Assembly: GCA_021613535.1 (NCBI GenBank)
Contig: CP075495.1
Coordinates: 620,001 to 684,000 of the forward strand
Direction: 5' to 3'
DNA: 64,000 nt
From: Adineta vaga
Taxonomy: Eukaryota > Animalia > Rotifera
Below, piece after piece: positions 9,161 to 53,300 of this stretch. Under the pieces are notes generated by a model. The model did no database searches. It saw only the letters and a program-made list of their open reading frames with translations, and was not told the origin of the DNA. Made by a program: the position numbers and the translations under genes. The first letter of the stretch is position 1; the number at the start of each line of letters is the position of its first letter.

Positions 9161-11221
9161 ATGACAACAAAAACTCGTTTTAGTGATATTGATTGTTCAT
9201 TTAAAAGATTAACACCAATTTATGGTTTTCAAAGTCAAAAACTCGTTTCACTTGATGAAGCATTAAAACCAATTGAATCACAAATTGATCAATTACAATA
9301 TTATATAAAAATCGCAAAAAAACATTGTCATTATCCATCTTCAGATGGATTAACACGTGATGAATCAGCTTCGATTTATATTTATACAATGGAATGGGGT
9401 GAACAAACTTTATATCGTCTTTTAAATCAAGCATTAAGAAATGAAAATAGACAAATTATTAAAATTTGGTTTCCTTATTTAAAATTATTTCATTCTGCAT
9501 TGAATAAATTACCAACTGTTAAAGAAATTATTTGGAGAGGAATTCCTGAAGATATTGGAAAACATTTTATTAAAAATCAACTTTTAACTTGGTGGTCAAT
9601 CAATTCATGTTCATCATCTGTTAATGTTATTAAACATTTTCTTGGAGATAATCAAAAATCAACTATGTTTTTAATTGAAGCATTAAAAGGAAAAAAAGTA
9701 TCGGGTTATACAGAATATGAAAATGAAGATGAAATTATTTTATCAATGGGAACTCAATTTCGTGTCAAATCTAATGCATTAGATCATCCAAATGGATCAT
9801 ATATTGTTCATTTAATTGAAATTAATGATGACGAAGATAATGAAGATTCATTAGCAACAGCAACAAATCAAATTAGTTTAACAAAAATTAAAATAAATCA
9901 AAGTAAATTCATTTCAATTTAATCTTTTCTTTTTAATAAAATAAATCTCAAAATATTTACAAATTAAAAAGAAAATGAGATGTTCTTTGATCTTTTAATT
10001 GATAAAACAAAAGAAACGAATGATTTTCTTATTCCAAATCTCGTCAAAAAACAAAGAAAATTTTCGGTTTTTTTCTTTAATTTCTTCGAAAAAAATTAAA
10101 ATCAAATTTGTTTTCATTGAAATCTTTTCTATGAACAAAATTAATTCTAAAGAGCTTCTTAGAAAAGTTTCTTTTTGAATAAAATCTTCGATTCAAATAA
10201 ATCAAACATTTCTCATTTACTTTTAATCAAAAAATTCAAACTCAATTTCGAATGAAAATCAAATCAAAAAGAAAATCTTTCGTTTTTTCATCAATTTCAA
10301 ATCTTTTCTTTTCTTTGTTTAGAAACGAAATTTCAACAAAATGGAACAATTGTTGCGGGAGGAAATGGAGATGGAAATCAATTAAATCAACTCTATCTTC
10401 CTGTTGGAATCTTTGTTGATGAAAACAAAAACATTTTCATTGCTGATTATGGGAATCATCGTATTGTTGAATGGAAATGTGATGAAAAACAAGGACAAAT
10501 CATTGCAGGTGGAAATGGACAAGGAGAGAGAATAGATCAATTGAATCATCCATCAGATGTGATTGTTGATCAACAAAATCATTCAATCATCATTGCTGAT
10601 CAACACAACAGCCGAGTGATGCGATGGTCAAGAGATCAAAAACAACAAATTCTCATTCAAAATATTGATTGTTTTGGTTTAACAATGGATCAACATGGAT
10701 TTATTTATGTTTCTGATTATAAGAAGGATGAAGTGAGAAAATGGAAGTTAGAAAAGATTAATGAAAACAAAGAAGGAATATTAGTTGCAGGTGGAAATGG
10801 AAATGGAAATCAAAGAAATCAACTCAACTATCCTTCGTTCATCTTTGTTGATAAAGATCAATCTCTTTATGTTTCAGATTATTGGAATCATCGTGTGATG
10901 AAATGGAGAAAAGATGCGAAGGAAGGAATTGTTGTGGCTGGAGGAAATGGTCAAGGAAACAATCTTAATCAATTGAATCATCCTCGAGGATTGTTTGTTG
11001 ATGAATGGAATCAAATCTATGTGGCAGATTCGGTGAATCATCGAATAATGCGATGGTGTGAAGGAGATGAAGAAGGGGAGATTGTTGTTGGTGGAAATGG
11101 TTTTGGAAGTGAATCAAATCAATTGAATGGTCCTCGAGGTTTATCATTTGATTTTGAAGGAAATCTTTATGTTTCAGATTGTTGGAATCATCGAATTGTT
11201 CGATTTGATAAAATTCATTGA
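9161..11221 (+). CDS. Gene A: ARTC-type (R-S-E) ADP-ribosyltransferase fused to 6-blade NHL propeller, 546 aa (exons 9161-9902, 10323-11221)
   Basis: ART motifs IWRG, WSINSCS and ENEDEII. The phase-1 donor A|GTAAAT at 9903 joins in frame to the acceptor TTTAG|AAACGAAA at 10323. Confidence 0.88.
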
Positions 11222-11830
11222 AATGAACTTTGCATTTCAAAGGAAAAGATTTGATAAAAAACGATTTTTGTTGATTTGATTTTGATTTTAAAAAAGAAAA
11301 AAGATTTTTTTCGAAATAAAATTGAGAAAATCTTTTAGTTTTTTGGAAAGACTTAGAATGGAAAAAAATGCAAAAGTTGATTTGTTTCGCTGAAATTGTT
11401 TTGTCAAAGAATTTTTCTTGTCGTGAAAAATGATTTTTGATTAAATTGAAATGAAATTTGTCGAAAGAAATATTTTGATTTGATAAAAATGTTCGTTGAA
11501 TCAAAGATTTTGTGTTTTTGATAATTCTATTTCTTTGAAAATAAAAAAAAGAATTTGTTTTGGTCAAATATCGATTTAAAATGATTAAAAATTAATTTGG
11601 ATTCGAAGGATTTTCGAAGAAAATTATTTGTAAATGTTGTTTGAAGAAATATTTCTAAAAAACGATTCTTTTTGCGAATGTTTTGACAAATTCGATGTGA
11701 TTTCTTAAAACTTCAACAAATTTTACGAGTGAAAACGAAGAAAAAAAAAGTTGAAATCGGATGGAAAAGTTATTTAAATTTTGTTGAATTTGAGTTTATT
11801 TTGATTGATGAAATGATCGAAGATATTCAA
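11222..11830 (+). repeat. 3' flank of gene A, highly similar to 3' flank of gene B (20703-~21310)
   Basis: Direct comparison shows long identical runs through to gatgaaatgatcgaagatatt. A further weaker block is 12240-12385 vs 21310-21480. Confidence 0.85.
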
Positions 11831-12459
11831 ATTAATATTTTAATCTAAAGATGAAGAAAGTGAAAATGGTTTTCATTGTTATAACGATGAAAGTTTCATC
11901 GACTTTAATGAAAAGAATCGAAAGATTTTCATTAAAATATTTTAATTTGATGCAAAAGAAAAGTTTTTAATTATTTGATTTGTTTCTCATTTGAAGAACA
12001 AAGAATTTCTTTTTTTTTTCACAAATTTCTTTGAAATGATCAATAAAATAGAAAAAAGAAATTTAAGTTTTTTGATCTCATATAAAAACATTTCTTTTGT
12101 CTTTTGTTTTTTGTTTTTAACATTATTATTGATTATGATCAATTTAGAGAAAAAAGAAAAGAAAATAGTTTTGTCTAGTTGAATTTTTTGTTTAATTAAC
12201 TTAATTTGTTGATGATCGTGTTAATGGAGAGAAAATATCATTTTCATAATGAAAAATATAAAAGAATATTCAACGAGTTAAAAATTAAGAGAGAAAAACA
12301 AGGAACGGATGACGAAAAAATAGAAAAAGTATCCACAGAAATGGAAACGAGGAAAGGCATTTACGAATGTAACTAGAAAAAATTAATCTTTCACTCGAAA
12401 TCTTACTGCACGATTTACATTGTTAAAGTTTCAGTTGAGTTTTCAATCTGGAATCTATT

Positions 12460-12514
12460 AGGGTGTGGGTGCGGATGAAGAAGGCCACAACATGCATATC
12501 CACACCCACACCCT
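12460..12514. repeat. Short hairpin element with telomere-like inverted arms
   Basis: AGGGTGTGGGTGCGGAT ... ATCCACACCCACACCCT, a 16/17 inverted match. Confidence 0.8.
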
Positions 12515-12539
12515 CGTTTTCTAGTCGGCATCATCATTC

Positions 12540-13535
12540 TGAAATCGACAAATCAAGAGTACAATGGAAGTGGAAATCAAACACAAATCCATAGTCGACA
12601 GAAGAACCTGATGAGTGGGAAAGCTTTTCGGACATCGAAAATATAATCATTGAAGAGGCGTTGGTGACCAAAAACGTTGTAGTCATACTCGACGATTGCC
12701 ATATTAACTTCAACAGCAACATTAAGATTAGCAATAGTAATATCAATAGACAACGTCCTATGAAAAGAGCCATAGATGGTGAACAAAGCAACCAAAAACT
12801 GAGACAAGGTCGGTTCATGTAAATTCCAATCATACTTAAAGCCTCATTTCACAAACAACATGCACTAACAAGAAATTGAGAATTCACTACAACTGCATCA
12901 GAACAACTCAACATAGCACACAAATTTTTCAAGTAAAGTTTATCAAAAATAGTTCAGTGCGCAGCTGACGGTCTAGTTGTCAAGGGTTAGTCATAAGGGA
13001 TGGAAGCATGCAGCAAATAGGAGAATGTTGTGCGCATCTATACACAATGGAAAGTTTTCTCTATCATAAACTCAATAGTATAATGCGACTAGTGGCTGAC
13101 GAAAAACATTACAGTGTATGGTTACACAAGATTGAAACATTTGAACCGTTTGCACTACTCTTAAACAACCATATAGATGAGTCAAAATCTGACAAATCAA
13201 AAATAGTTTATCGAGACGCGTACTTAACTGATGAAATGATCCAAAACTATTACACTGCCATTCGACGACCAAAAGATCTTAATGAAGACGATGATATGAC
13301 TCCATCATTTCCGGCTTTTACATCATGTTCGCGAAATCGAGCCAAAGCGGAAGAGTACGAAAATGTTCTCTTTATCATCGAACTAATATTCAACAGATCC
13401 GTTGATGTATCTCAATTTTCTGATTATCCTGATGAAGAAGAAGAAATTATCAAACCAGGCGTACTTTTTGTCATCGAAAACATTGAATACGATTCCGAGT
13501 GCGGCAAACATCTCATTGATCTGAGCATTATATAG
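12540..13535 (+). pseudogene. WWE-like domain plus ARTC ADP-ribosyltransferase pseudogene
   Basis: VQWKWKSNTNP*STEEPDEWESFSDIENIIIEEA...RQRPMKR is WWE-like, with stops at 12592 and ~12819. The downstream ORF has LYTMESFLY, VYRD, FTSCSRNR and YPDEEEEII. Confidence 0.75.
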
Positions 13536-17620: not shown

Positions 17621-20600
17621 ATGGCAACTTCTCAAAAGATCATTTCTTTATCTTATTCACGACGTAAAATAGCACTTATCATTGGTATTGGTGATTATAT
17701 TATGGGAAAACAATTACCAAATGCAATAAATGATGCAAAAGATATGTCAAAAGAATTGAAAAAGATTGGATTTATTATTCATAATGATGGTGAAGCAAAA
17801 TTAAATTTAACATATAAAGAAATGAGAAGAACTCTTACAGATTTTGAATGTTCAATTGAGAAAGGAGATATGGTTTTATTTTATTTTGCTGGACATGGAA
17901 CACAATGGGAAGTAAGAAAGATTTATTTATTGAGAATTTTCTTTTCTTTTATTTTAATTTTAATTTAGGATCAAAATTATCTTATTCCAATAAATAATTT
18001 TAAAGAAGAAAATGAAACAAAAGTTGAATTAAGTGGTTCTGATTTAAAAAAATATTCAATTAATGCACAAAATCTTTTAAATAATATTGATGATCGAGAA
18101 CCATTTCTTATTATGTTTTTCTTAGATTGTTGGCGAACATATCATTTACGTCATATGGAATTACAAAGAAATACAAGAGAATATTCAAATAATAATTCAT
18201 TACATGGACTTCAATCAATGCCTATTAAAGTTGGATCATTAATTGCATTTGCTTGTGCACCAGGAACAACAGCAGATGAGGGAAATAATCAAGAAAAAAA
18301 TGGTTTATTTACTAAATATCTTCTTCAACATATTTCAAAACCAAATGAAGATATTCTTGAGATACTTCGAGATGTTACACGTGATGTGATTAATGAATCA
18401 AACAAAAAACAAATTCCACATGTTACTTCTGTTTTGACACATCGAAATATTTATCTCAATGAAATAAAACAAGGTATAAAAATAAATTTCTTTTATTAAT
18501 TTTATTGTTCTGAAAATAAAACAAAATTAAAATCATTTCTTCTTTTAGATTCATTTGAATCATCAATAAAACAATTATCGATTTCAACTATGAATAAATC
18601 AACAATAAAACAAAAGCAAAGTAAATTTATTTTATTTTTAATATTAACTAAAATTATTCTTTCGATATTAAAAGAAAAATAATTTATTTGTATCGAAATC
18701 AAATGTTAAAAGTTAAACAAAGAAATATTTATAAGAATATTAAACAATTTCACTAATCCTTTTTAAATCATAAATTCAATCTTTTGAAATTATTTAATTC
18801 ATATGAACTAATTAATTAGATGTTTTTCTCCTTGATCTTTCTATTAATCACGTTTTTTCGATACAAATAGATAAAAAATAGTTAAGTATCTGTGTATTTC
18901 TTTGTTAATTGTGATTTAGACTGACTGATTTTCAATTTATATTATTGAGATATAATGAATTATTATTTATCTTTTGTTCGTTCTTGATAGTTGAAGGCGA
19001 AGTTAGGAGTAATTAGAAATCGACAAATAATTTAACATTTGTTTGGAAACATTTCGATGAAGAAATAACTTCTTAGATCAACTTCAGTCAAGATTAAACA
19101 GATCTTCTCGATAAACATTGTTATTTATTTATTTTAAAATAGAAATTCAATTTCTAAGATATTTTATTTTGATTTACAAATCAAAAGATTTTTCTTTTCA
19201 AATTAATTTCAATTTAAAACAAATTTCTTTCTTTTACGTTTAAAAATTAAAAAGAAAAGAAAAGAAAAGAAAAGAAAAGAAAAGAAAGATTACTTTATTT
19301 TATAATTCAATCAAAGTTCATTTTCTTCAATTTTATTTTAATTACAAAAATTAAAATTAATCTTCGAAGAAAATAATTCATTAATCAAATAAATTATATT
19401 TATTAATAAATAATTTGATCAAATTATCAATTCAACAAAAAAGTAAATTCGTTTCTTTTCTCTTCGATTCTTTGATAATTATTCGATCAAATCAAATCTT
19501 TTTATTTATTTTAAAAAATAAATCAAAACAAAAACTTTTCTTTATTTATCAATTTAAAATTCATTTTTTTCTCTTTCGTTTTTTCAACAAACAAAATCAA
19601 TTTTACGAATTTATTTCGTTTTTTTAATTAACTTAAATAAAATTCCATTCGAAAAGAAAATATTTATTTTCATCTCGTTATTTGAAATTTCATCAAATTA
19701 TTAATGATTTTATTCAAATGAAACTTTTTTCAAAAGAAACGAAACTCAAAATATAAAAACATCGATCAAAACAAATCGTTTTTCTTTTCTTTTCTTTGTT
19801 TAGAAACGAAATTTCAACAAAATGGAACAATTGTTGCGGGAGGAAATGGAGATGGAAATCAATTAAATCAACTCTATTGTCCTCAAGGAATCTTTGTTGA
19901 TGAAAACAAAAACATTTTCATTGCTGATTGTGACAATCATCGTATTTTTGGGTGGAAATGTGATGAAAAACAAGGACAAATCATTGCAGGTGGAAATGGA
20001 GAAGGAGAGAGAATAGATCAATTGAATTGTCCATCAGATGTGATTGTTGATCAACAAAATCATTCAATCATCATTGCTGATCGAGGGAACAGACGAGTGA
20101 TGCGATGGTCAAGAGATCAAAAACAACAAATTCTCATTCAAAATGTCGATTGTTGGGGTTTAACAATGGATCAACATGGATTTATTTATGTTTCTGATTG
20201 GAAGAAGAATGAAGTGAGAAAATGGAAGTTAGAAAAGATTAATGAAAACAAAGAAGGAACATTAGTGGCAGGTGGAAATGGAAAAGGAAATCAAAGAAAT
20301 CAATTCAACTTTCCTATGTTCATCTTTGTTGATAAAGATCAATCTCTTTATGCTTCAGATGAAAAGAATCATCGTGTGATGAAATGGAGAAAAGATGCGA
20401 AGGAAGGAATTGTTGTGGCTGGAGGAAATGATGAAGGAAACAATCTCAATCAATTGAATGGTCCTCGAGGATTGTTTGTTGATGAATGGAATCAAATCTA
20501 TGTGGCAGATTGGGGGAATAATCGAATAATGCGATGGTGTGAAGGAGATGAAGAAGGGGAGATTGTTGTTGGTGGAAATGGTAAAGGAAGTGAATCAAAT

Positions 20601-20702
20601 CAATTGAATTGTCCTTATGGTTTATCATTTGATTCTGAAGGAAATCTTTATGTTTCAGATTGTGTCAATAATCGAATCGTTCGATTTGATAAAATTCATT
20701 GA
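17621..20702 (+). CDS. Gene B: caspase-like peptidase C14 (catalytic Cys replaced by Trp) + Ser/Lys linker + NHL propeller, 588 aa (exons 17621-17911, 17969-18473, 18549-18620, 19804-20702)
   Basis: Motifs ALIIGIGDY, LFYFAGHG, LDCWR, GSLIAFACAPG and NGLFTKYLL. All junctions are GT-AG and frame-consistent (phases 0,1,1). Confidence 0.85.
19250..19284 (+). repeat. (AAAAG)7 microsatellite in the last intron of gene B
   Basis: Direct reading. Confidence 0.9.
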
Positions 20703-23700: not shown

Positions 23701-23750
23701 TATCTTATCGTCCGATAAAAAAAAGAAACTTCATAGTACTTTTCTTTGAT

Positions 23751-24833
23751 TTAAATTGTACTTAATATTGTATGAACGATTTGTGCTGAATTTGTAACTC
23801 GTGTAAAATATGGACTTGGATCTCTTGATGTTGCTTCACGACTAAGTGCATCCCAGAAATTTTCTCCATAATAAAAATATTGTGATAAATTAAATAAAAT
23901 CGACATTAAATATGGAAATAATCGAAGACTTGTTTGAATAAATAAAAATCGATTATAATGAAGTTTTATAATTTGTCGTTTAAAAAAATTCAAATTTTCA
24001 TTTTCAAGAGAAAATACTCGACCTGTTGTTATTGTATAACATTTTAATAACATGTTGACAACTGTAAATATATATACATAAGTAAAAACAATAAAACAAT
24101 AAATAATTATCATAGGTAATGCATTTGTAAAGAAATAAGGAAGAACTAATGCTCCAACAAGTAGAAATGTTAATAAAGATAAACCTAATGCAATATAAAA
24201 GATAACTTTTGAAAGAATTCTTCGCCATGATTTCTTTCTTTCATTCATTCTTTGAATTTCTTTTCGATTAATATGATATAAATATAATTTTGAAAGAAAT
24301 GTATAAGCAAAACTTGTAAATGGATCAAATAAATAATTATATATTCGATAACCAAATAAATTATAACAATTCCATGTTGAAGCATTATCACCAGATGAAC
24401 AATTTGTTTGAATTATACAATACCAAATTGTATGAGCAATTAATGGTAAACAAGAAAAAAGTATATCAAATAGATCAAATGTTGGTAATTTTTCGCGTTT
24501 TTTAGTTTTTAATGAAAAACCTTTCATTTCTTGAAGAATTAAAATAGTTGAAACAAAAAATCCATTTGAATTTGTACGAATTTGTTGTGTAGAAATTCGA
24601 CGGGTTTTTTCTTCTTCGTCTACTTCATCTTCTTCTTCAATTTCAATAAATTCCATTGGTAATAACCATGTATCATAAACAGCTTTATCCCAAATTCGTA
24701 AGGAGAAATCAAAAATCAAAAATTGTGCAGCAATAACAAAATATGGTTGAATTCCTGTATGATAATCACGAAATGTATAAAGTAATGGATTCGCTTTTTG
24801 ATAATCTGTTGGAATAGAAGTTACTGTACTCAT
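23751..24833 (-). CDS. Uncharacterised multi-pass membrane protein (tandem paralog 1)
   Basis: 360-aa ORF with several hydrophobic segments. It is strongly similar to 25075-26163 (NPLLYTFRDYHTGI, WDKAVYDTWLLPMEFIEI, WNCYNLFGYRIYNYL). Confidence 0.8.
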   Translation of the reverse strand: MSTVTSIPTDYQKANPLLYTFRDYHTGIQPYFVIAAQFLIFDFSLRIWDKAVYDTWLLPMEFIEIEEEDEVDEEEKTRRISTQQIRTNSNGFFVSTILILQEMKGFSLKTKKREKLPTFDLFDILFSCLPLIAHTIWYCIIQTNCSSGDNASTWNCYNLFGYRIYNYLFDPFTSFAYTFLSKLYLYHINRKEIQRMNERKKSWRRILSKVIFYIALGLSLLTFLLVGALVLPYFFTNALPMIIIYCFIVFTYVYIFTVVNMLLKCYTITTGRVFSLENENLNFFKRQIIKLHYNRFLFIQTSLRLFPYLMSILFNLSQYFYYGENFWDALSREATSRDPSPYFTRVTNSAQIVHTILSTI

Positions 24834-25074
24834 TTTTTATTCAAAATTTTTATATTGAATGAATACACATTTTTATATATGTATAGACGAAAGAAATAAC
24901 CTCGATCTTTATCATATTTTATAGATGAAGGTATCTAGTTATCATTAAAATATTTATTTCTCTATGAATATTATTACCGTAACCAAGGAAAAAATTTCTT
25001 TTATATGGTTGATAAAAAGTTTGAAACATGTCCTTCTTTCTTTCTATGACAAATGTTCAGTTAAAATTCTTTTT

Positions 25075-26163
25075 CTATGTTGAACTTAAAGCTGTATGAG
25101 CAAGTTGTGATGAATTTCCTGAACGATCAAAAAATGCTGTTGGATCTCTTGATGATGCTTCACGACTAAGTGAATTCCAAAAAGTTTCTCCATAATAAAA
25201 ATATTGTGATAAATTAAATAAAATTGACATTAAATATGGAAATAATCGAAGACTTAAATGAACAAATACTAAACGATTATAATGAAGTTTTTTAATTATT
25301 CGTTGATAAAAATTTAATTTTTCATTTTTAAGAGAAAATACACGACCAGTTGTAATTGTATAACATTTTAAGAAAATATTAATAACTGTAAATATATAAA
25401 TATAAATAAATACAATAAAACAATAAATAATTATCATAGGAAATGCATTTGTAAAGAAATAAGGAAGAATCATACCACCAACGAATAAAAATGTTATAAT
25501 TGATACAATTAAACTAAGAAAAAAGATGATTATTACAGTAATTCTTCTCCATTTTTGTTTTCGTTGAAATATTGAAATACCTTCTCTTCGTTTTTGAATA
25601 ATTAAAATTGTTTTTGAAATAAAATTAAAAGTAAAACTTATAAATGGACTAAGAAGATAATTATATATTCGATAACCAAATAGATTATAACAATTCCATA
25701 ATGTTGCATTATCACCTGACATACAATTCGATTGAATAACACAATACCAAATTGCATGAGCAAGTAATGGTAAACAAGAAAAGATAAGATCATATAAATC
25801 ATAGATTGGAATTGTTTTACCTTTAGTTTTTGTTTTTATTGAAACTTTTTTATAGTGTTCAACAAAAAATAAACTCGATATTGAAAAGGAATTTTGTGGT
25901 TTAGGTGGTGATTGAATTATTTGTCGATGACGACGTTGAGGTAAAGGTTCAGGTTCTTCATCTCTTTGAATTTCAATAAATTCCATTGGTAATAACCATG
26001 TATCATAAACAGCTTTATCCCAAAAACGTAGAGAAAAATCAAAAATTAAAAATTGTATTGGTAAAATAAAATATGGATGAATTCCTGTATGATAATCACG
26101 AAATGTATAAAGTAATGGATTACCATTTTGATAATCAGATGGAATTGAAGTTGTACTACTCAT
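25075..26163 (-). CDS. Uncharacterised multi-pass membrane protein (tandem paralog 2)
   Basis: 362-aa ORF collinear with 23751-24833, with conserved protein blocks and silent-site divergence. Confidence 0.8.
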   Translation of the reverse strand: MSSTTSIPSDYQNGNPLLYTFRDYHTGIHPYFILPIQFLIFDFSLRFWDKAVYDTWLLPMEFIEIQRDEEPEPLPQRRHRQIIQSPPKPQNSFSISSLFFVEHYKKVSIKTKTKGKTIPIYDLYDLIFSCLPLLAHAIWYCVIQSNCMSGDNATLWNCYNLFGYRIYNYLLSPFISFTFNFISKTILIIQKRREGISIFQRKQKWRRITVIIIFFLSLIVSIITFLFVGGMILPYFFTNAFPMIIIYCFIVFIYIYIFTVINIFLKCYTITTGRVFSLKNEKLNFYQRIIKKLHYNRLVFVHLSLRLFPYLMSILFNLSQYFYYGETFWNSLSREASSRDPTAFFDRSGNSSQLAHTALSST

Positions 26164-27072: not shown

Positions 27073-28146
27073 ATGTCAAATTTAACAAGTTATTTTACTT
27101 TAGTAAATCAATCATTAAATCGTTATGGTCCAATTCCACTTCTTTTATTTGGTACAATTGGAAGTCTTTTGAATTTATTAATTTTTACACGTAAAATTTT
27201 TCGAAATAATATTTGTGTAATTTATTTCTTAGCTTCAACTATTTCGGATATATTTATGATTGCATCTGGTCTTCTTTCTCGTGTTCTTAATGGATTTGGT
27301 TATGATCTTGCTCAAAATATTTCAATATTATGTAAATTAAGAATATTTACAACATATTATACGGGTTATGCAGCTGCTTGGTTTATTAGTTTTGCTTGTA
27401 TTGAACGTTATCTTAGTTCATCAACAAATGTACGAAAACGACAATTTGTAACAATGAAAAATACATTTATTTCAATTCTTTTTATTCTTTTATTTGGTTT
27501 TATTGCATTTGGTGAACAATTCTATTGTATGGATATAAATCAACATTTATTAGGTGGGCCACAATCATGTTATCAATTACAATTAAATATTTATTGTCAA
27601 ATTGCTGATAGTTTATTACAATTTTTCTTTCAAATACTTACACCAACAATAATGATGATTATTTTTGGTTTATTAATTGTACGAAATGTTCGTCGAAAAC
27701 ATATGCGAGTTGATATTGGACAACAAACAAATACAATTGCTTTGTCAATAGAAAAACATCGTCCTTTACATGAAGGAGAATATTTGAGAAGAAAATCAAC
27801 GATTACAATTGAATTTAATCGAACAACACAAAAACGTGATGCACAATTAATTACAATGTTACTTATTCAAGTAAATCAAATGATTTTCAATAGTTTTAAT
27901 TGTTGCTTTTTTTTTCTTTAGGTTATTTATTTTATAATCTCATCATTTCCAATTAGTGTTTATAAATTTTATGCCATTGCAACATTTCATGATCCGAGAT
28001 CGTCTCTTCAAAGATCTATTGAAAATACGATCTTTATTCTTTGTGTTTTAAGTTTATTTTCAAATAATTGTGTTAATTTTTATATTTATACTCTTTCTGG
28101 AGCAGTTTTTCGTAAAGAATTCATTAAATTATTTCGATTTAATTAA
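27073..28146 (+). CDS. Rhodopsin-like (class A) GPCR (exons 27073-27870, 27922-28146)
   Basis: GTIGSLLN (TM1), YFLAS..SD (TM2), CK.R...CIERY (TM3, DRY-like). Exon 2 supplies TM6-7 with NFYIYTLSGAVFRKE. Confidence 0.88.
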
Positions 28147-37869: not shown

Positions 37870-40800
37870 AAAATTTAATTCTTGGGAAAACTTTTCTCGA
37901 TATCTTTAGTTTGATTTTGTTATTTTTCAAATTCAACATATTACAGAACAATCATTCTATTCCGAGATTTTGAACATCGTTAAATCAGTTTCAACTGATT
38001 CTCTTAATTTCCCAGTGGGATTCGATTGTGTTCAAACTGATTGATCTCTTATATCAATACAATAAGTAATGGGGATGAGGAAAGAGAATGTGATTCCATG
38101 GAGGAATTCTGAAACTAATTCCACACTGTTCAACATCACAGAATAGAAAATATTCTCTTTATATCGATTCTTTTCATGAAAATAGATAAAACTTTCTTTG
38201 TTAAAACAATGAAAAATACCTTCACTTCTTTTTCAGTTTCAAATTTCTCCAAAACTTCATAATCATTTTTTTAAACGATTCACAGGTTGTTTCATTTCGT
38301 TGATCGATTATTGAAATATCATCTTGAATATGTTCGACCATTTCATTATTGACAATAAAATCGAATTCATCAAAATTCAAGTATCTTTTCTATCCGATTT
38401 CAATCTTTTTTCTTCGTTTTCATTCTTAAAGTTCGTTGAATTTCAACGAAATTACATCGAATTTTTCAAAATCATCGAAAATCAATTTTATTTTATTTCT
38501 CATTGAAAACACTGTGAAATCACTTTGACAGAAACAAAATTATCGAAAACACAAAAAATAAAAGAAAATCTTTGTTATATCGAACATTTTCATCAAATCA
38601 AAACATTTCTTTCGCCTAATTCAAATTAAATTTAACAAAAATCTTTTCGTTTGAAATGCAAAGTTCATTTCAATGAATTTTATCAAATCGAACAATTCGA
38701 TGATTTAGATAATCTGAAACGTAAAGATTTCCTTCTAAATCAAATGATAAACCATAAGGACAACTCAACTGATTTGATTCACTTCCTTCACCATTTCCAC
38801 CAACAACAATCTCCCCTTCTTCATCTCCTTCACACCATCGCATTATTCGATGATTCCACAAATCTGCCACATAGATTTGATTCCATTCATCAACAAACAA
38901 TCCTTGAGGATGATTCAATTGATTGAGATTGTTTCCTTGACCATTTCCTCCAGCCACAACAATTCCTTCCTTCGCATCTTTTCTCCATTTCATCACACGA
39001 TGATTCGAATAATCTGAAACATAAAGAGATTGATCTTTATCAACAAAGATGAACGAAGGCCAGTTGAGTTGATTTCTTTGATTTCCTTTTCCATTTCCAC
39101 CTGCAACTAATATTCCTTCTTTGTTTTCATTAATCTTTTCTAACTTCCATTTTCTCACTTCATCCTTCTTATAATCAGAAACATAAATAAATCCATGTTG
39201 ATCCATTGTTAAACCCCAACATTCAATATTTTGAATGAGAATTTGTTGTTTTTGATCTCTTGACCATCGCATCACTCGGCTGTTCAATAGATCAGCAATG
39301 ATGATTGAATGATTTTGTTGATCAACAATCACATCTGATGGATAATTCAATTGATCTATTCTCTCTCCTTCTCCATTTCCACCTGCAATGATTTGTCCTT
39401 GTTTTTCATCACATTTCCATTCAACAATACGATCATTCACATAATCAGCGATGAAAATGGTTTTGTTTTCATCAACAAAGATTCCAAAAGGATGATAGAG
39501 TTGATTTAATTGATTTCCTTCTCCATTTCCTCCCGCAACAATTGTTCCATTTTGTTGAAATTTCGTTTCTAAACAAAGAAAAGAAAAAAGATTTATGGAA
39601 AAAGAAAATGAAAAGTTTGTTTTTGTTAAAAAAGATAAATTTCTTTGTCGAATTAAATTTTTTGTTTTAAAATTGATTTTCATTTGATTTATTTGAAAAA
39701 AGAAAAGGAAATTTTCAACGAAATTGTTTTATTAAATAATCGAAGATAAAATAAAGAATTTGTAATTTTTGTTGAAATGATCATTTTTTCTTTTAGTTGT
39801 TTTTCTCATTTAATAAAGAAATTTATTTTCGAAAATATTTTGAAATGAAGATAAAGAAAAGATTTAATTAATCGATAATTTTTCATTTTAAATTGAAGAA
39901 AAAAAGAAGATTTTCTATTGAATTTTTAAATCGAATAAAACATTTTCCACTTCAATTTCTAATTAAAAAATAAAATAAATATTTACCACGTTTTGATTTT
40001 GTTGATGTTTTATTATTAGTTGAAATAGATGAATGTTGTTTAGATGAAACTGAAGAATCTAGAAAGAGGAAAAATTTCAATTTAAAATCTCTTTGATATG
40101 ACTACGATTAGAGTTCGAAAGAAAAAAAGGTCTCCATTTTATGAAGATACTCATTACCGAGTAGTTTTCATGTTTTTTTCTCTTAAATAATAACATTGTA
40201 TACGAGTCAAAACGATGTTTTCCTAAAATAATTCTGAATAATAATATTTAACATTATGCTTTTTTATTAAAATAAATATTTTTTAATTTTTATCAAATTA
40301 AGAATATTGTGTAATTGAAAAAAGTGTCGTTTTCTTTTTTATTTCAGATTAGATTATGATTTAACTCTTAATCGTCTAAAATATTCTTTTTATTGTTTAT
40401 AAATAATAAAAACAACAATGTTAAATATTTTATATTTAATTTATAAATCTCTTTTATAAATTCAATTTTTTTTCTCCTAAAAGATAATTTAACGTACGTT
40501 GATATAATTAGATCTTAGTGTTTACATTGATAGATGTACAAACATCGTTAACAAAATGTAGAGAACATCACAGACAAAGTTCTCGAAACTATTCGATATT
40601 AATAAAGCTTTTTTTAACAGAAAAAGAAATTTTATTGTTTAGAAATGAATGCAAATATCAAATCGTTCTTTTCTTCAACTCTCATATTTCGATCTTGTGG
40701 ATGTATTTAGAACTGAACTTCATCGTCAGGCACGTAAACATTCACGTCCTTAACTTGAGAAAGAAATTGCGAAGAGAAAAAAGATTTCTGTTTCGGACAG

Positions 40801-40990
40801 TCGAGGGTCAAGTGAGTCGAACAACGAACGTTACTTGTCCCTTTTATTCTCATTTTTTAGCGTCAAACATATTTTGTTGAAAAATGATTCTCGAAAGTCA
40901 AACATTGTATTTAATTTGATGTCTCAGCAAGGAGGGAAGTGCGAAGCCAGCACGTATCGGATTTTTCAGGTGTTAAGGTGCTCACACTTC
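37870..40990. repeat. Segmental duplication shared with ~49515-52810 (3' flank, NHL exon, intron, linker exon, most of next intron)
   Basis: Near-identical core ~38115-40610 vs ~49805-52310 apart from the NHL variable codons, with more diverged shoulders on both sides. Confidence 0.9.
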
Positions 40991-41816
40991 CTCTTTGTGT
41001 GCGCGTATGAATAAAATCTAATAAATTAAACTTACTCATTGATTGAATTGATGATGTAGTTTTCTTTTCATTTGAAATTGTTAATTTCTCAATAATTGGT
41101 AAATTATCATCAAAAGGCGAAGCAAGTGTTACATAAGGAGGAGTTTGTTCTTTCAAATGAATAATAAATAAACGTTTTGATGCTTTCCATTTACTAACAA
41201 TTTTAAAAAACGTTCCAGGAAGAAGAAGAATTTCATTTTCATCTTGAAAATAAGAATGAGATTGAATAAATTTTCCATGTAAACATTCAATATTAAAAAT
41301 TGTTCGTTGTTTATCTGTTTGAAGAAATGTTTTGATAACATTCATTGTTTCTGTACATGAACTCATTCCCCACCAAATTTGATCTTCATTTTCATAATGA
41401 TCATTTAAATTTTCTGAAACACCTCGATAAATAATTCCTTTAAATGATGGAAGTTTAAATAAAGCTGTAAAGAATAATTTAAGATAAAGAAACCACGAAA
41501 CTAATTGATTTCGATTTTTTGATCGAAGTTTTTCATTAAGTAATTGAAATAAACTTGGATATGGATGAGGCCATTGCATTGTATAAAGATGAATTGCAGC
41601 TGATTCATCTTGTGTTAAACCATCTTTTGGTTTTCGACAATTCTTTTTTGCAATTTCAATCATTGTATCACAGTCATAAAGTAATGATTTTATTGGTTCA
41701 ATTGCTTCTTTTAATGAAACTAATGGGTATTTTTCATAACCTTTAATTGGTGATAATGCCTGATCTGATTCTTTATCAGCATCTAGAAAGCGTTGTGGAA
41801 TTATTCTTTCAGCCAT
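38670..41816 (-). CDS. Gene D: ARTC-type ADP-ribosyltransferase + 72-nt linker exon + NHL propeller, 583 aa (exons 41816-41036, 40058-39987, 39568-38670)
   Basis: Motifs IYRG, WGMSSCT and QDENEILL. All junctions are phase-1 GT-AG, and the linker exon is nearly identical to that of caspase gene F. Confidence 0.85.
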
Positions 41817-44438
41817 TAAATCAAATTTTATTCAAATCAAAGTTTGTCTTACGAAAAATATGAAGAAATGATTTCGATTTAAATATGATATAAATGAATG
41901 AAAGGAAGAAAGAGAATGAAATGTTTTTCGATGATTTTTTTGTTTATGTAAATAGAATTGTTTGAGAAGATTTTTCTTCATTTTGATTCAACAACGAAAG
42001 TAGAAGTATGAAAAATAAAGAAAACTTTCAAATTGTATTTTTCTTTCTACTTCCTATAGACATTTAAGTTTCTCTCTATTCGATTCAAAAGAAAATTAAC
42101 GAAAACAAAACTATCGTGATTTCTTTGATAATATTTTATTAAAAATTGTCTAAGATGATTTTTCATCACCAGTTCTTTCGAAGTCAACGATTTTATTTCG
42201 TCGTATAATTTTGAAATAAATTTCTTTTCGAACTGATTCTTTCCTCGGTAAAAATTCTTTTCTTCAAGTATAGATGAAGATTCATCACTTGTCGTCAAGT
42301 TTTCTGTTTCTATCGATTGTCGAACGGTTCATTGAAAAAGTTCAATTAAATTTATAGAATAAGATAAAACTCAAACAACTAATGAAAAATACGAAATCAA
42401 CGATTTATACAAATAAAAAAGAAAGAAAAAACGTGAATTTGTATTGATTTTTTGTTGAAGAAATAAATTAAGAAATTCAGTTGAATCTAAAATCATAATT
42501 AATAATTGAATTTGTATCATAAAATTTCATAGAATTTTAATTAAGTATATAAAACATCTTTAAACATATTATTATGTAATAATACAGATTTATCATGTAA
42601 GATTAAATTAAAGAAATATTTAATCAACTATCAATGAATAAACATAAATAAACATGAACACAATGAACTTCACGTTGTTTTCTATAAAGCGTGTGCGAGA
42701 GATGAACGTGCTTCTTATCCTTCACTAAAAGTTACATCTTTTCCATCGCTCATTCTCAAATCATTCGCAGTAAATATTTGTAAATCTGCAAATAATTGAC
42801 AAAATAGAATATTTTCATAAATTGTTCTAGAAAAGTTCTAAGCAATTTGATTTGTATCTTTAGCTAAACACATTTTATCAAGAATCGCTGCTAAACGTGA
42901 AGACTTACATGAACCTGTCGCACGGGTAATTCCAATTAAATCATAGATAATTGAATTGAACTTCAAGTTAACGAAACTTTCTTCATATTAAAACTTCGTA
43001 TAGAATTTCATTTTGTTAATATAAATTCATTGATTCTTTTCGATACAATTCGACTTTCACTTCATTTTTTAATCACATAAGTCAAATTAATCTTAATTGA
43101 ATATCTCAAATAATCAAGAAATAATAAAAGATATTCGCTGTGAGTAAAACTTTATTCATCAACCAACTTTCAACAAATAAAATATCCATATTAATCGCAC
43201 AAATTCGATTCACTTTAAGATTTACTTAATCATTTTCATATGTTTATCTGATTATTTAATTGTATAAAAGAACAAGAAAAAGTCATCAAAATCAAATAAT
43301 GTTGAAGAACAATGATTTCTTCAAACAGTGTTATCCATATTTGATATAAACTATAACATTTAATTCTTCAGATTTCTCCACATTATTCGAAATAAAATTA
43401 ATAATTTGATCTGTTATTGTTTTGATCAATAAATTTGTTCATAATCTTCTGTAAATTATCGAAGAAAGTACAAATTCGTGTTTGTAAACCGAATATACGT
43501 ATCAATATCTTAGATTATTTAAAGAATTTCTTTTAAAAATAATGATTGAATAACTTTTGCATCGAGATGATGAATTAGTCTTTCCAATTTGTTTCAAGAA
43601 GATTTATTAAACGATGATATTCATCTTTTGTTGAAAATTCGAATAAATTATTGTTTATGATCGATTGTTAAAATTAAATTAATCCATGTTGAGAATTTAA
43701 TTTATATTCAATGATACCAAACAGATTCAGTTCAATCTAAGACATTTCTTTTGTTGTTCTTGTTGTTGTTTTCTTCGTCATGTTTGAACAATAAAAATCA
43801 ATCAAAGATCGACGAATTTATTTTAGAATAATTGAATAAAATTTACCTTTGTTTGTTCTTTTACTTGGAGAATCAAAGAGTTTTATAGAATTTATCATAA
43901 TCGAGATTAAATTTTGTACATTTTTTTTCATTCTTTTGGATGATCATGAAAGAAGAAGGTCATTATTTACGACAATTAGTTTTTCTTATTTATTTCAAAT
44001 GTCAGATGAGATAATGCCTTAACTTATTCAGATTTTTAAACAATTTCATTCGATTTTCTGATTACAAATCGAAAATTGATGTCTTTTCTTCAGAATGTAA
44101 AGTTTTTTTCTAAATGATTCGATGGTTTTTCTCAATCATAAAATAAAAGCTTTTTCATTCAAAGGTTTCCAATCAATTTATATTCTTTTGTTTCTTTCAT
44201 TGATTTTCAAGAAGGAAAATACGATTTAGGTGTTGTTAGCAATTTGACACTTTTTCAAAGCTTAGAACAACTTGTCCTCGTGTTCAAGTGTCCACATTTT
44301 TCGCATGATGATTTGATTAGCGAAGAAAGAAAAGAAATCATTTCATTCTATAAAAAAAAGAAGCGAATTCTTATTGAATCTTTTTACAAAAAACAAATAT
44401 ATTTTCTCAATCATTTTTCTACCTAAATTTTGTTTATC

Positions 44439-46713
44439 TTAAAATAAAAACTTTTCTTTTTCTTTTTCGAAATCAAATCGAACGATTCGATCATTTCCAC
44501 TATCTGAAACATAAAGATTTCCTTCTAAATCAAATGATAAACCTTGAGGACAATCCAATTGATTTGATTCACTTTCTTCACCATTTCCACCAACAACAAT
44601 CTCCCCTTCTTCATCTCCTTCACACCATCGCATTATTCGATGATTCCTCCAATCTGCCACATAGATTTGATTCCATTCATCAACAAACAATCCATGAGGA
44701 CAATTCAATTGATTAAGATTGTTTCCTTGACCATTTCCTCCAGCCACAACAATTCCTTCCTTCGCATCTTTTCTCCATTTCATCACACGATGATTCGAAT
44801 AATCTGAAACATAAAGAGATTGATCTTTATCAACAAAGATGAAAGTAGGATAGTCGAGTTGATTTCTTTGATTTCTATTTCCATTTCCACCTGCAACTAA
44901 TATTCCTTCTTTGTTTTCATTAATCTTTTCTAACTTCCATTTTCTCACTTCATTCTTCTCACAATCAGAAACATAAATAAATCCATGTTGATCCATTGTT
45001 AAACGAGAACAATCAATATTTTGAATGAGAATTTGTTGTTTTTGATCTCTTGACCATCGCATCACTCGTCTGTTCCCACGATCAGCAATGATGATTGAAT
45101 GATTTTGTTGATCAACAATCACATCTGTTGGGCCATTCAATTGATCTATTCTCTCTCCTTCTCCATTTCCACCTGCAATGATTTGTCCTTGTTTTTCATC
45201 ACATTTCCATTCAACAATACGATCATTCCCCCAATCAGCAATGAAAATGTTTTTGTTTTCATCAACAAAGATTCCTTCAGGACGATAGAGTTGATTTAAT
45301 TGATTTCCTTTTCCATTTCCTCCCGCAACAATTGTTCCATTTTGTTGAAATTTCGTTTCTAAACAAAGAAAAGAAAAAAGATTTGTGAAAAACAAAATGA
45401 AAAGTTTATTTTTTCGTTTTTCAATCAACTAAAAATTGAAAACGAAGAAAAAGAAATTTGCTTTGAATAAAATCATTTCGAATTTCATGAAGTTTGAGAT
45501 AAAAATCAAAAATTTTCTTTTTAATTTAATTTTCTTTTAGAAATTCAGTTTGATTTTGAATTAAAAGTAAAGAGGAAATCTTTGATTTCATCGAAAATTA
45601 AATTATGAAAAAGAAGAAAAATATCTTTTCAATTGATTATTATAATTTAATGAACGAAAAATAATTCGAAATTTGAAAATCAATAAAAATGTTTTTATTT
45701 TTTCTGAAGATTCGAATAAAAAAATGAATTAATAATAATAATATAAAATCTTTGCGTTTTTCTCAGATTTTAGATAATTTTCGAAACTTTTTTTGTTCAT
45801 TTTAGTGTTCTATAAAAGATTTAGTAATATATAAATGCACATTGACATATTTATTTTCTCTCTCTCCTTACTCAATTCTTCATTATTTTACATATGTTTA
45901 ATTGAACTAAAGATCCAAAATGAAATATTTATGATTGTAAATATGATAAAATAAAATAAAGAAGAAAAGACTAAATTAATCTATTTAAAGACAACATTTT
46001 TCAGTTATTGTTACCCTTTGAACACGAAATATCAAAGTTTCTCGTAATCATTCGAATGAAGAACATAAAACTAAATTGTATTAATTTGATTTGTCTTTTT
46101 GTTCTTCATTAGAAAATAAAGATCTTTTTTAGACATCAGTTTTAAATCAGTTTTTCATTTCAATAAAATAAGAATTGAAAACTTTCAACTTACTCTTTCT
46201 TGAAATAACTGATATTTCATTAATAAATCCTTGACAATGTTCTTGAATTGAAATATTTGATGGATTATTTAGTTCTTCATTCATTTGATTTAATTTTCTT
46301 TTTAAATCCTTCAAATCAATTTCATTAAATTCATTTTCTCGTTGAATTTCTTTGATTTGTTCACCTAATTCGCTTAACTTTTGTTCGATGTCTTTAAAAG
46401 ATGTTTTGGAATGTTCAATAACATTTTGTCGACATTTTCCCGCTGTTTGTTGAATAATTTGAATGGAATTTGTTTCCCATTGATCAATTTGTTTTATTAG
46501 TGAATGATTTTGTGGATTTTGTTTTTGATCGTTTATCGTATCTCTAAATTGATCATAATCATTGATAATAAGATGTAATTCTTCATTTAATGATTCTTGA
46601 TGTCCTTTGAAATCTTGTTGACAAAATTCCTTTGAACAACCTTGACACTGAATTATAATTTTTTTATATTTCAAACATTTGAAACATTGTTTTGTACTAT
46701 TTGCCATAGCCAT
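44439..46713 (-). CDS. Gene E: B-box-like + coiled coil + NHL propeller with alternative C-terminal tail, 479 aa (exons 46713-46194, 45358-44439)
   Basis: Inverted paralog of gene C with the same 835-nt intron. The NHL exon ends RFDFEKEKEKFLF instead of RFDKIH. Confidence 0.87.
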
Positions 46714-49700: not shown

Positions 49701-50361
49701 ATAAGTGATGAGGGTGAAGAAAGATAATGTGATTCCATTAAGGAATTTAGGGAGATAGAATGAAACTATATACCAATATTAAGTGTATTTGGTAATTGGT
49801 TGGAACTAATTCCACACTGTTCAACATCACAGAATAGAAAATATTCTCTTTATATCGATTCTTTTCATGAAAATAGATAAAACTTTCATTGTTATAACAA
49901 TAAAAAACATCTTCACTTCTTTTTTCCGTTTCAAATTTCTCCAAAACTTCATAATCATTTTCTTAAACGATTCACAGGTTGTTTCATTTCGTTGATCGAT
50001 TATTAAAATATTATCTTGAATATGTTCGACCATTTCATTATTGACAATAAAATCGAATTCATCAAAATTCAAGTATCTTTTCTATCCGATTTCAATCTTT
50101 TTTCTTCGTTTTCATTCTTAAAGTTCGTTGAATTTCAACGAAATTACATCGAATTTTTCAAAATCATCGAAAATCAATTTTATTTTATTTCTCATTGAAA
50201 ACACTGTGAAATCACTTTGACAGAAACAAAATTATCGAAAACACAAAAAATAAAAGAAAATCTTTGTTATATCGAACATTTTCATCAAATCAAAACATTT
50301 CTTTCGCCTAATTCAAATTAAATTTAACAAAAATCTTTTCGTTTGAAATGCAAAGTTCATT

Positions 50362-53300
50362 TCAATGAATTTTATCAAATCGAACGATTCGATGATTAAC
50401 ACAATCTGAAACATAAAGATTTCCTTCTAAATCAAATGATAAACCAATAGGAAAATTCAATTGATTTGATTCACTTCCTTCACCATTTCCACCAACAACA
50501 ATCGAACCTTCTCGATCTCCTTCACACCATCGCATTATTCGATGATTCTCCCAATCTGCCACATAGATTTGATTCCATTCATCAACAAACAATCCTTGAG
50601 GATGATTCAATTGATTAAGATTGTTTCCTTGACCATTTCCTCCAGCCACAACAATTCCTTCCTTCGCATCTTTTCTCCATTTCATCACACGATGATTCGA
50701 ATAATCTGAAACATAAAGAGATTGATCTTTATCAACAAAGATGAACGAAGGATAGTTGAGTTGATTTCTTTGATTTCCTTTTCCATTTCCACCTGCAACT
50801 AATATTCCTTCTTTGTTTTTATTAATCTTTTCTAACTTCCATTTTCTCACTTCATCCTTCTTATAATCAGAAACATAAATAAATCCATGTTGATCCATTG
50901 TTAAACCAAAACAATCAATATTTTGAATGAGAATTTGTTGTTTTTGATCTCTTGACCATCGCATCACTCGTTTGTTCCCTCGATCAGCAATGATGATTGA
51001 ATGATTTTGTTGATCAACAATCACATCTGATGGATGATTCAATTGATCTATTCTCTCTCCTCTTCCATTTCCACCTGCAATGATTTGTCCTTGTTTTTCA
51101 TCACATTTCCATTCAACAATACGATGATTCCCAAAATCAGCAATGAAAATGTTTTTGTTTTCATCAATAAAGATTCCAAAAGGACTAGAGAGTTGATTTA
51201 ATTTCTTTCCAACTCCATTTCCTCCCGCAAGAATTGTTCCATTTTGTTGAAATTTCGTTTCTAAACAAAGAAAAGAAAAAAGATTTATGGAAAAAGAAAA
51301 AGAAAAGTTTGTTTTTGTTAAAAAAGATAAATTTCTTTGTCGAATTAAATTTTTTGTTTTAAAATTGATTTTCATTTGATTTATTTGAAAAAAGAAAAGG
51401 AAATTTTCAACGAAATTGTTTTATTAAATAATCGAAGATAAAATAAAGAATGTGTAATTTTTGTTGAAATGATTATTTTTTCTTTTAGTTGTTTTTCTCA
51501 TTTAATAAAGAAATTTATTTTGGAAAATATTTTGAAATGAAGATAAAGAAAAGATTTAATTAATCGATAATTTTTCATTTTAAATTGAAGAAAAAAAGAA
51601 GATTTTCTATTGAATTTTTAAATCGAATAAAACATTTTCCACTTTCAATTTCTAATTAAAAAATAAAATAAATATTTACCTCGTTTTGATTTTGTTGATG
51701 TTTTATTATTAGTTGAAATAGATGAATGTTGTTTAGATGAAACTGAAGAATCTAGAAAGAGGAAAAATTTCAATTTAAAATCTCTTTGATATGACTACGA
51801 TTAGAGTTCGAAAGAAAAAAGGTCTCCATTTTATGAAGATACTCATTACCGAGTAGTTTTCATGTTTTTTTCTCTTAAATAATAACATTGTATACGAGTC
51901 AAAACGATGTTTTCCTAAAATAATTCTGAATAATAATATTTAACATTATGCTTTTTTATTAAAATAAATATTTTTTAATTTTTATCAAATTAAGAATATT
52001 GTGTAATTGAAAAAAGTGTCGTTTTCTTTTTTATTGCAGATTGGATTATGATTTAACTCTTAATCGTCTAAAATATTCTTTATATTGTTTATAAATAATA
52101 AAAACAACAATGTTAAATATTTTATATTTAATTTATAAATCTCTTTTATAAATTCAATTTTTTTTCTCCTAAAAGATAATTTAACGTACGTTGATATAAT
52201 TAGATCTTAGTGTTTACATTGATAGATGTACAAACATTGTTAACAAAATGTAGAGAACATCACAGACAAAGTTCTCGAAACTATTCGATATTAATAAACT
52301 TTTTTTTTTAACAGAAAAATAAATTTTATCGTTTAAAAATGAATTCGAATATCAAATCGTTCTTTTCTTCAACTCTCATATTTCGATCTTGTGGGTGTAT
52401 TTAGAACTGAACTTCATCGTCAAGCACGTAAGCATTTACGTTTTTAACTTCGGAGATAAATTGCGAAGAGAAAAAATATTTCTGTTTCGGACAGTCGAGG
52501 GTCAAGTGAGTCGAACAACGAACGTTACTTGTCCCTTTTATTATCATTTTTTTAGGGTGAAACATATTTTGTTGAAAAATGATTGTCGAAAGTATAACAT
52601 TGTATTTAATTTGATGTCTGAGCAAGGAGGAGAATGCAAAGCAGGTGCCGCCAGCACCTATCAACATATACAGGTACTGAGTTACTTGTATTCTCTCCCC
52701 CGGTAGGTGACGAAGCGCTGGTAGTATCAGATGCGCATTTTCCATTTAGCTCGTACTCGCTCAGTATCTATCGGGGTTTTCAGGAGCTTAGGTACATACA
52801 CTTTCACCCATGTGTCAGCGGGCGGATGTGGGTATATGTGTAGATGTGAGTGAAGAAGATATATCAACACACCCACTCACATCCCCACCCTTAATACGTT
52901 ACTTATGAAAAATTCTAAAATTCTTTACCTTTTTTCCCATTGAATAAACAAATATGATCATCTGTTAAAATAGAAATAACATGTGGAATTTGGTCTTTAT
53001 TTGTATTTGTCATCACATCTTTTCGAACACGACGTAAAAGTATATCAATATCTTCATTTGGTGTTGGAAGATGTTTAAGAAGATATTTTGTAAATAAACC
53101 ATTATTTTCTCTATTATTTCCATCCTCTGCTGTGGTTCCTGGTCCACAGGCAAATGCAATCAATGAACCCGCATTTTTTGTAGACATTGAACTTAATCCT
53201 CTGGTATGATTAGTTGAATTACCTCTTGTAGATTTTTGTAAATCAGCATTACGTAAATGATAAGTTCGACAACAATCTAAGAAAAACATGATTAAATATG

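Follow-up and report, generated by a model that had tools for sequence, protein, structure and literature searches.

How can the copies of one exon remain almost identical over most of their length and yet differ strongly at a small, regularly spaced set of codons? The question is raised by a 64,000-nt stretch of chromosome 2 in Adineta vaga, a bdelloid rotifer (contig CP075495.1 of assembly GCA_021613535.1, positions 620,001 to 684,000, GC content 21–32%), referred to here as the window. It carries six intact copies (A to F) of a single-exon, 298-codon NHL propeller. A preceding sequence-only reading had located these copies between 10323 and 51260, and had proposed that their variable codons form a binding face comparable to the complementarity-determining regions (CDRs) of antibodies or the concave surface of variable lymphocyte receptors (VLRs). 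All six copies were recovered at the positions given there. A 58-nt tract that it quoted has exactly one match per copy, with three copies on each strand. When the six loci are aligned, about 900 nt are kept in all of them and the flanks diverge. The conserved block starts directly after a polypyrimidine tract and AG, specifies 298 residues and then ends in a stop codon. The six NHL exons are as follows:

10323–11221 (+): copy A, six-blade propeller; from alignment and translation, with a phase-1 acceptor after a ...tttgtttag tract and the stop codon at 11219–11221
19804–20702 (+): copy B; from alignment, and from the annotated protein P0132 (I4U23_005852), residues 290–575 of which match at 99.65%
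29812–30710 (+): copy C, used as the reference copy and for the AlphaFold model; Pfam NHL at 112 bits, predicted local distance difference test score (pLDDT) 95.4
38670–39568 (−): copy D; from alignment and RNA contigs, with a splice joint at 39568
44439–45358 (−): copy E, with an alternative short C-terminal tail; from alignment
50362–51260 (−): copy F; from alignment

Hypervariable codons and the face they occupy

A set of 35 hypervariable (HV) codons was fixed by motif before any rates were seen. Included are the variable residue of GGNG-x-G, the two outer residues of xPx (in blade 3, xCx) and all three x positions of DxxNx, which amounts to about six codons per blade. The residue strings listed earlier for these motifs each match the ungapped codon alignment of the six copies. 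Of the 295 codons shared by the copies, 65 are variable and only nine of these are purely synonymous. The HV codons account for 39.1 of the 53.5 mean pairwise nucleotide differences (73%), while the exon outside them is 98% identical. The proposal that some 30 of about 298 codons carry nearly all of the change is therefore right as to concentration but overstated as to 'nearly all', since 31 framework codons also vary, mostly as singletons. Similarly, the framework had been described as frozen and is nearly so, although not strictly: the proportion of differing sites is 0.027 for synonymous (pS) and 0.016 for non-synonymous (pN) framework sites, compared with a pN of 0.40 in the HV codons. The non-synonymous rate (dN) of the HV codons exceeds the synonymous rate (dS) of the framework by a factor of 20.4 (bootstrap 95% interval 12.1–45.6), far more than chance would give.

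The family extends far beyond the window. A search of the genome (100.8 Mb, six contigs) with copy C gave more than 250 first-look candidate loci, and the 40 that were scored are 78–100% identical to copy C and are found on all six chromosomes. Of the first 30 loci retrieved, which are the closest copies, 24 keep an open frame and six (L012, L014, L019, L024, L028, L030) contain frameshifts or stops, and roughly one fifth of the subfamily would thus appear to be pseudogenes. In the 24 intact copies (Nei-Gojobori method), dN is 0.70 for the HV codons and as high as 1.05 for the xPx codons, while the framework has a dN of 0.061 and a dS of 0.106, so that HV dN is 6.6 times framework dS. Twenty-five sites have an entropy of at least 2 bits, at strictly periodic positions. 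Site by site, 29 codons lie above the framework synonymous rate after Bonferroni correction, with omega values of 4.2–11.5, and 27 of them belong to the motif-defined set; this test is a parsimony count on a FastTree tree that ignores recombination, and hence serves as supporting evidence only. The earlier expectation of a dN/dS much greater than 1 at the variable codons is borne out by both sets of copies and at the level of single sites. Diversifying selection at the amino acid level is the simplest reading of this pattern.

A protein search returned 6,343 proteins at E ≤ 1e-10, the best 120 of which are all from bdelloids (A. steineri, A. ricciae, A. vaga and Rotaria). For 106 of these proteins, A. 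steineri being their main source, the motif set takes in 27 of the 35 sites of highest entropy, which suggests that the hypervariable pattern is an old property of the family.

The fold is well supported. Copy C matches the Pfam NHL family (PF01436) at 112.2 bits, against a cut-off of 20, in four stretches. An AlphaFold2 model of the same copy, built from a 30-sequence alignment, has a predicted template modelling (TM) score of 0.92 in addition to the high pLDDT, and shows 24 strands arranged as six four-stranded blades. Foldseek matched it to Thin, TRIM71, TRIM2, TRIM3, PknD and the PknD-derived Pizza designs (TM-score 0.73–0.82, E = 1e-19 to 1e-21), and searching PDB sequences with a profile also points to the NHL fold. 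In an up-and-down four-stranded blade, successive strand connections alternate between the two faces of the propeller. In the model, the long D-A connection holds GxG and the first x of xPx, the second x of xPx is the second residue of strand A, and the B-C turn holds DxxNx. Because connections alternate, the D-A and B-C connections lie on one face, an assignment that is drawn from the strand topology of the model rather than from its coordinates. Twenty-eight of the 29 selected sites fall in these loops or at strand ends on that face, and the A-B and C-D loops of the opposite face, 63 residues in all, contain none (hypergeometric p = 7e-9). In the model, then, the variable sites cluster on a single propeller face, as had been anticipated.

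The interaction surface of TRIM-NHL proteins is described as lying on top, around their central groove (PMC9634614), and the variable face of the rotifer propellers is presumed to be ligand-binding. The comparison with CDRs and VLRs fits the outcome, a single variable face, with binding as its presumed function. It does not extend to the somatic route by which those receptors are diversified, which is not supported here, each copy being a complete germline exon.

Origin of the variation

A comparison of the window with itself revealed three larger duplications, namely C/E (2.3 kb, inverted), D/F (3.1 kb, direct) and A/B (the exon plus 600 nt downstream), which allow the exon to be set against its own flanks:

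C/E: upstream flank 1.3% diverged over 1.34 kb; framework 12/780 nt different; HV codons 42/105 nt
D/F: upstream flank 0.85% diverged over 1.06 kb, first 360 nt downstream identical; framework 18/780; HV codons 29/105
A/B: downstream flank 3.2% diverged; framework 13/780; HV codons 46/105

In all three pairs the framework has diverged much as the neutral flanks have, and it is the HV codons alone that stand out. Most of the remaining pairs have flanks that do not align, even though their framework identity is about 98%, which implies that the exon was spread or homogenised independently of its surroundings. There are several signs of recombination. Between 36% and 43% of framework site pairs fail the four-gamete test, with fewer failures at short distance (permutation test resembling the pairwise homoplasy index, p = 0.002–0.004). 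Two loci on different chromosomes, L016 (C1:13601476-13602366) and L021 (C3:3636623-3637513), are identical over codons 1–144 save for two codons and then show 60 nt differences; they mark a sharp breakpoint of interchromosomal conversion or recombination close to codon 145. The nearest paralogue shifts along each of the six exons, and some 120-nt windows are identical with their HV codons included (A/F at 301–420). Runs of at least five identical HV codons were observed 13 times, compared with 4.1 expected if columns were independent.

Local mutagenesis was considered as a source of the variation. Four-fold codons that adjoin HV codons (the Pro of xPx, for instance) have a synonymous codon diversity of 0.058, compared with 0.067 in the framework; regional hypermutation around the HV codons is ruled out, as the silent sites sandwiched between them are as quiet as those of the framework. 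The HV codons vary at all three codon positions, and the framework contains abundant third-position adenines that are invariant. Together these two observations rule out adenine mutagenesis of the type caused by diversity-generating retroelements (DGRs). No copy resembling a DGR template turned up in the set inspected (40 copies scored, 42 fetched, and 34 that were intact and aligned), and no search aimed at a reverse transcriptase was made. Each class of HV position has its own residue repertoire: Cys, Tyr, Trp, Arg or Ser at the first x after D, Gly, Glu, Asp or Trp at the second, His, Asn or Asp after N, and Glu, Lys or Gln within GxG. Other letters seen in the RNA contigs, assembled from public runs, at HV codons 75, 115 and 117 and at silent codon 214 were rejected as a sign of somatic variation, being what is expected from paralogous contigs mapping at ≥97% identity; such cross-mapping confounds variant calls.

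These results are probably best explained by a germline-diversified sensor cassette that is kept under diversifying selection and is both homogenised and shuffled by gene conversion. Each gene would specify an intracellular protein of two parts: the NHL sensor and, joined to it by phase-1 splicing, an N-terminal output domain that is an ADP-ribosyltransferase, a caspase or a coiled coil with a zinc-finger-like motif. In A. vaga the cassette family would number over 200 loci, and its proteins across bdelloids would run to thousands. Positive diversifying selection on the protein would keep some 35 codons diverse, lining the presumed ligand-binding face, while the scaffold, silent sites included, would be left near-identical by a spread that was recent and by ectopic gene conversion restricted to the exon. 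Conversion would also move blocks of HV codons between copies, with selection acting on point changes. What results would be a repertoire of recognition surfaces, carried in the germline and linked to effectors of cell death or modification, a system that may be taken as one of innate immunity or non-self recognition.

Several points weigh against this explanation. HV divergence is already saturated in the closest pairs, in which about 25 of the 35 codons differ at a framework difference below 2.5%. Between C and E, the numbers of HV codons with 0, 1, 2 and 3 nt differences are 8/16/7/4, close to the ~8/13/10/5 expected from family-wide frequencies. Linkage between neighbouring HV codons is weak, and HV divergence is nearly independent of framework divergence (r = 0.28). 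For C or E, the genome search turned up no donor that is nearly identical; the next best copy reaches only 95% identity, and replacement of the whole exon from an extant donor is not supported for this pair. Neither stepwise point substitution nor block conversion alone comfortably explains the speed and independence of the HV changes. In addition, the tree-based site test disregards recombination, the assignment to one face is topological, and gene conversion may lower framework dS and so inflate the ratio, although it would lower HV divergence equally. The data show the sequence pattern, the selection signal, the fold, the one-face topology, recombination, and the splicing of gene D and its transcription; ligand binding, an immune function and the relative weight of point substitution and conversion are inferred.

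It is because speed and independence are not fully explained that a different origin is kept in consideration, at low probability. A dedicated, codon-targeted process in germline or soma could re-randomise the loop codons after duplication, either by templated micro-conversion from paralogues or other blades or by an enzyme-directed mutator, and selection would then act only as a filter. Such a process would account for pairs with about 1% flank divergence having HV codons as different as those of random pairs, as well as for the C/E spectrum, the low correlation with framework divergence, the near linkage equilibrium of adjacent HV codons and the lack of a closer donor for C or E in the genome search. 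It is nevertheless quite improbable. Silent positions between HV codons are not raised, the class-specific residues and the positions that vary are unlike those left by DGRs, the copies are complete germline exons, gene D is transcribed with its own HV codons, and the D/F differences are linked to framework variants, as expected of ordinary conversion tracts. The RNA letters mentioned above likewise have paralogues as their explanation. In its specific form, that bdelloids re-randomise some 35 face codons soon after duplication and leave neighbouring bases untouched, by very short templated conversion from the 200 or more copies or by a motif-guided mutator, the idea is just as doubtful; if true, an ancient asexual animal would possess, in its germline, a counterpart to the gene conversion or hypermutation of antibodies.

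It is also unlikely that the loop codons are simply neutral or unconstrained in an old family whose framework looks young through gene conversion or silent-site constraint, with no positive selection. Gene conversion among copies is indeed demonstrable, and framework dS amounts to only about 0.1 between copies from different chromosomes. However, conversion tracts carry HV codons with them, as in L016/L021, and would homogenise neutral loops too. Where the non-coding flanks of a pair are 0–1.3% diverged, the HV codons are 28–40% diverged, and neutral sites cannot exceed neutral flanks by so much; each position class, moreover, has a restricted repertoire of binding-type residues. Constraint on silent sites is not needed, because in flank-matched pairs the framework rate is about that of the flanks. 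A family of this size and repetitiveness is a recognised risk in genome assembly, and yet an assembly or annotation artefact (collapsed or chimeric repeats) is extremely improbable, as six intact reading frames lie in distinct flanks, sequencing runs from 2013 (type not on record) contain 23–63% of the sampled words of the window, RNA contigs are exact across D-specific codons and also match across the gene D splice junctions, and the same pattern is present in separately assembled species. A selected and converted germline cassette thus continues to be the preferred explanation.

Output domains upstream of the NHL exon

Exons that could supply the N-terminal part of the proteins lie upstream of each copy. 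They were searched separately, each as its own query:

9161–9910 (+): copy A exon for an NAD:arginine ADP-ribosyltransferase (ART); Pfam PF01129, E = 2.3e-9; residues 1–251 of the ART+NHL paralogue P0131 match at 98%
17621–18628 (+): copy B caspase (peptidase C14) exons; Pfam PF00656, E = 6e-18 and 7e-14 in two open reading frames (ORFs); residues 1–293 of P0132 map here
28457–28976 (+): copy C exon 1, with a Cys-rich zinc-finger-like motif and a coiled coil; tblastn of P0002 residues 1–173 (78%); GTAAGT donor; 173 codons plus 1 nt
39987–40058 (−): copy D linker exon, 72 nt, Ser/Thr/Lys-rich; GT-AG joints 39568^39987 and 40058^41036 in RNA contigs; open in the required phase
41036–41816 (−): copy D ART exon, 260 codons plus 1 nt; Pfam PF01129, E = 1.5e-9; joint 40058^41036 and phase arithmetic
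46195–46713 (−): copy E exon 1, with a zinc-finger-like motif and a coiled coil; inverted duplicate of copy C exon 1
51680–51751 (−): copy F linker exon; BLAST of the copy D linker, 70 aligned bases identical
52915–53770 (−), ORFs 53405–53770 and 52915–53289: copy F caspase-like exons; 75% nucleotide identity to the copy B caspase region, with AGHG and FAC-x-G motifs in the translations

Splicing was read directly for gene D, from contigs of four runs mapped over 38600–44500; the run type 'RNA' is a guess in the records, but the contigs carry GT-AG joints. The joint 39568^39987 is present in three runs, and a fourth has a variant 3 nt away. The joint 40058^41036 is carried by one contig, which has three mismatches and possibly derives from a paralogue. 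The NHL exon contributes the remaining 2 nt of the split codon, and gene D consists of an ART exon, a linker exon and the NHL exon, in frame. One RNA contig is exact to copy D over 39011–39107, which includes D-specific HV codons, showing that gene D itself is transcribed.

For the other genes, annotated proteins act as guides. P0132, a caspase+NHL protein, is gene B itself (99.65% over the NHL part). P0131 (ART+NHL) is specified by a paralogue on chromosome 2, whose ART exon is 98% identical to that of copy A while its NHL part is only 88% identical. P0002 (472 aa) sets the limits of copy C exon 1, which ends in phase 1. Genes D and F have the linker exon and intron in common but have different first domains, the caspase-like exons of F being presumably spliced to its NHL exon. 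Other bdelloids have annotated NHL proteins with DED-, US22-, Apple- and EGF-like domains. From these arrangements, the NHL exon appears to behave as a phase-1 cassette that is placed behind many output domains.

The zinc-finger-like exons of C and E were less readily classified. A Pfam scan of their ORFs found no family at all, RING and B-box included, only weak coiled-coil-like matches (ATG17-like, Sec2p); their language-model neighbours are B-box clusters at 0.83, below the reliability mark of 0.9. No NACHT or NB-ARC (NOD-type) family was found in any upstream ORF scanned with Pfam, and the annotated members list an effector plus NHL only. No signal peptide was evident by eye in the N-termini, which suggests that the proteins are cytosolic.

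The 3′ end of the exon shows a variant of its own. In copy E and at least two other members (L023 and L025), an acidic/lysine-rich tail (FEKEKEK...) replaces the usual ...DKIH and stop, an alternative ending that is attributed to a small deletion at the exon 3′ end. In copy E the tail lies at 44439–44480 (−).

Related recognition systems and other features of the window

The closest analogue of the rotifer genes appears to be the NWD/HNWD (HET-E/D/R) family of the fungus Podospora anserina. According to PMC4986451, diversifying selection in the WD40 propellers of these proteins acts at the interaction face on four positions of each repeat, their repeats evolve in concert within and between genes, and their N-terminal effectors vary (citing Paoletti 2007 and Chevanne 2010). 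Both groups combine a propeller sensor with few selected codons per blade, a remainder kept near-identical by exchange between members, and varied effectors. The rotifer genes differ in having NHL rather than WD40 propellers and no NACHT or NB-ARC domain in the upstream ORFs scanned. A repeat identity of at least about 85% within one gene characterises receptors of the fungal NWD type, whereas the blades of copy C are only 49–71% identical to each other at the nucleotide level, and for this reason the conserved unit is taken to be the whole six-blade exon across paralogues. No variation in repeat number was seen among the rotifer copies, and the host is an animal without repeat-induced point mutation (RIP).

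Among animals, teleost finTRIM and primate TRIM5alpha belong to multigene families in which the surface loops of the B30.2/SPRY domain are hypervariable under positive selection. They resemble the rotifer genes in being multigene families with a hypervariable C-terminal recognition domain and, possibly, a B-box/coiled-coil N-terminus. In contrast, the recognition domain of the rotifer genes is of the NHL type rather than B30.2, a RING went undetected, and ART, caspase and DED modules are all joined to this one sensor exon. The silent framework sites of the rotifer family are far more uniform than is known for finTRIMs.

The TRIM-NHL proteins (TRIM71/LIN-41, TRIM2, TRIM3, Brat and Thin) have the same six-bladed fold (TM-score about 0.8) but are only 24–27% identical to the rotifer cassette. 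They are conserved, single-copy RNA-binding regulators, while the rotifer genes represent a lineage-specific expansion to hundreds of copies, with a hypervariable top face and other N-terminal domains. The N-terminal RING of TRIM-NHL proteins is lacking too: the Pfam scan detected none in the exon-1 ORFs of C and E, and A, B, D and F specify ART or caspase domains instead. Along its full length the rotifer cassette shows about 36% identity to NHL proteins of bacteria (P0152 and P0163, a Bacteroidota type IX secretion system protein and a YvrE-like protein), and an origin by horizontal transfer from bacteria is conceivable.

Antibody CDRs, lamprey VLRs and DGR targets likewise concentrate variation, rich in Tyr, Trp, Ser, Gly, Arg and Asp, at a few surface positions of a constant scaffold. 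In the rotifer this diversity is borne by many complete germline genes and lacks an adenine-specific pattern.

That NHL-containing families have expanded in A. vaga is noted briefly in PMC3846280. In the literature on bdelloid or rotifer NHL, immune or ART genes, no description was found of a hypervariable face, a frozen scaffold or effector swapping. The genes look like a large, previously undescribed non-self recognition repertoire, with hundreds of germline receptor-like genes in one genome, whose sensor would be wired to caspase, ADP-ribosyltransferase, death-effector and TRIM-like modules. An animal and the NHL fold would thereby be added to a design known from fungal NOD-like receptors (NLRs), in which a conserved scaffold is combined with selected hypervariable positions and concerted evolution. 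Bdelloids are the standard example of ancient asexuality, and it is still asked how they hold their own against parasites in the absence of sex; the family would give bdelloid gene conversion a concrete adaptive role.

The remainder of the window contains several other features. Between genes A and B, a 175-aa ORF (13008–13535, +) has an ART domain (PF01129, E = 5.7e-7) but no neighbouring NHL exon of its own, and may be a truncated or orphan effector gene. Two long ORFs (2583–3791, + and 58447–60492, +; 402 and 681 aa) matched no Pfam family at E ≤ 0.01. Tandem paralogous ORFs of 360 and 362 aa (23751–24833, − and 25075–26163, −), 77% identical in nucleotide sequence, look like multi-pass membrane proteins, and a 282-aa ORF directly upstream of gene C (27073–27921, +) looks like a seven-transmembrane receptor. 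Related, GC-richer segments with short ORFs on both strands are found at 40518–40880 (+) and 52389–52876 (both strands), within the long intron/intergenic region common to D and F, and could represent a small mobile element or an RNA gene.

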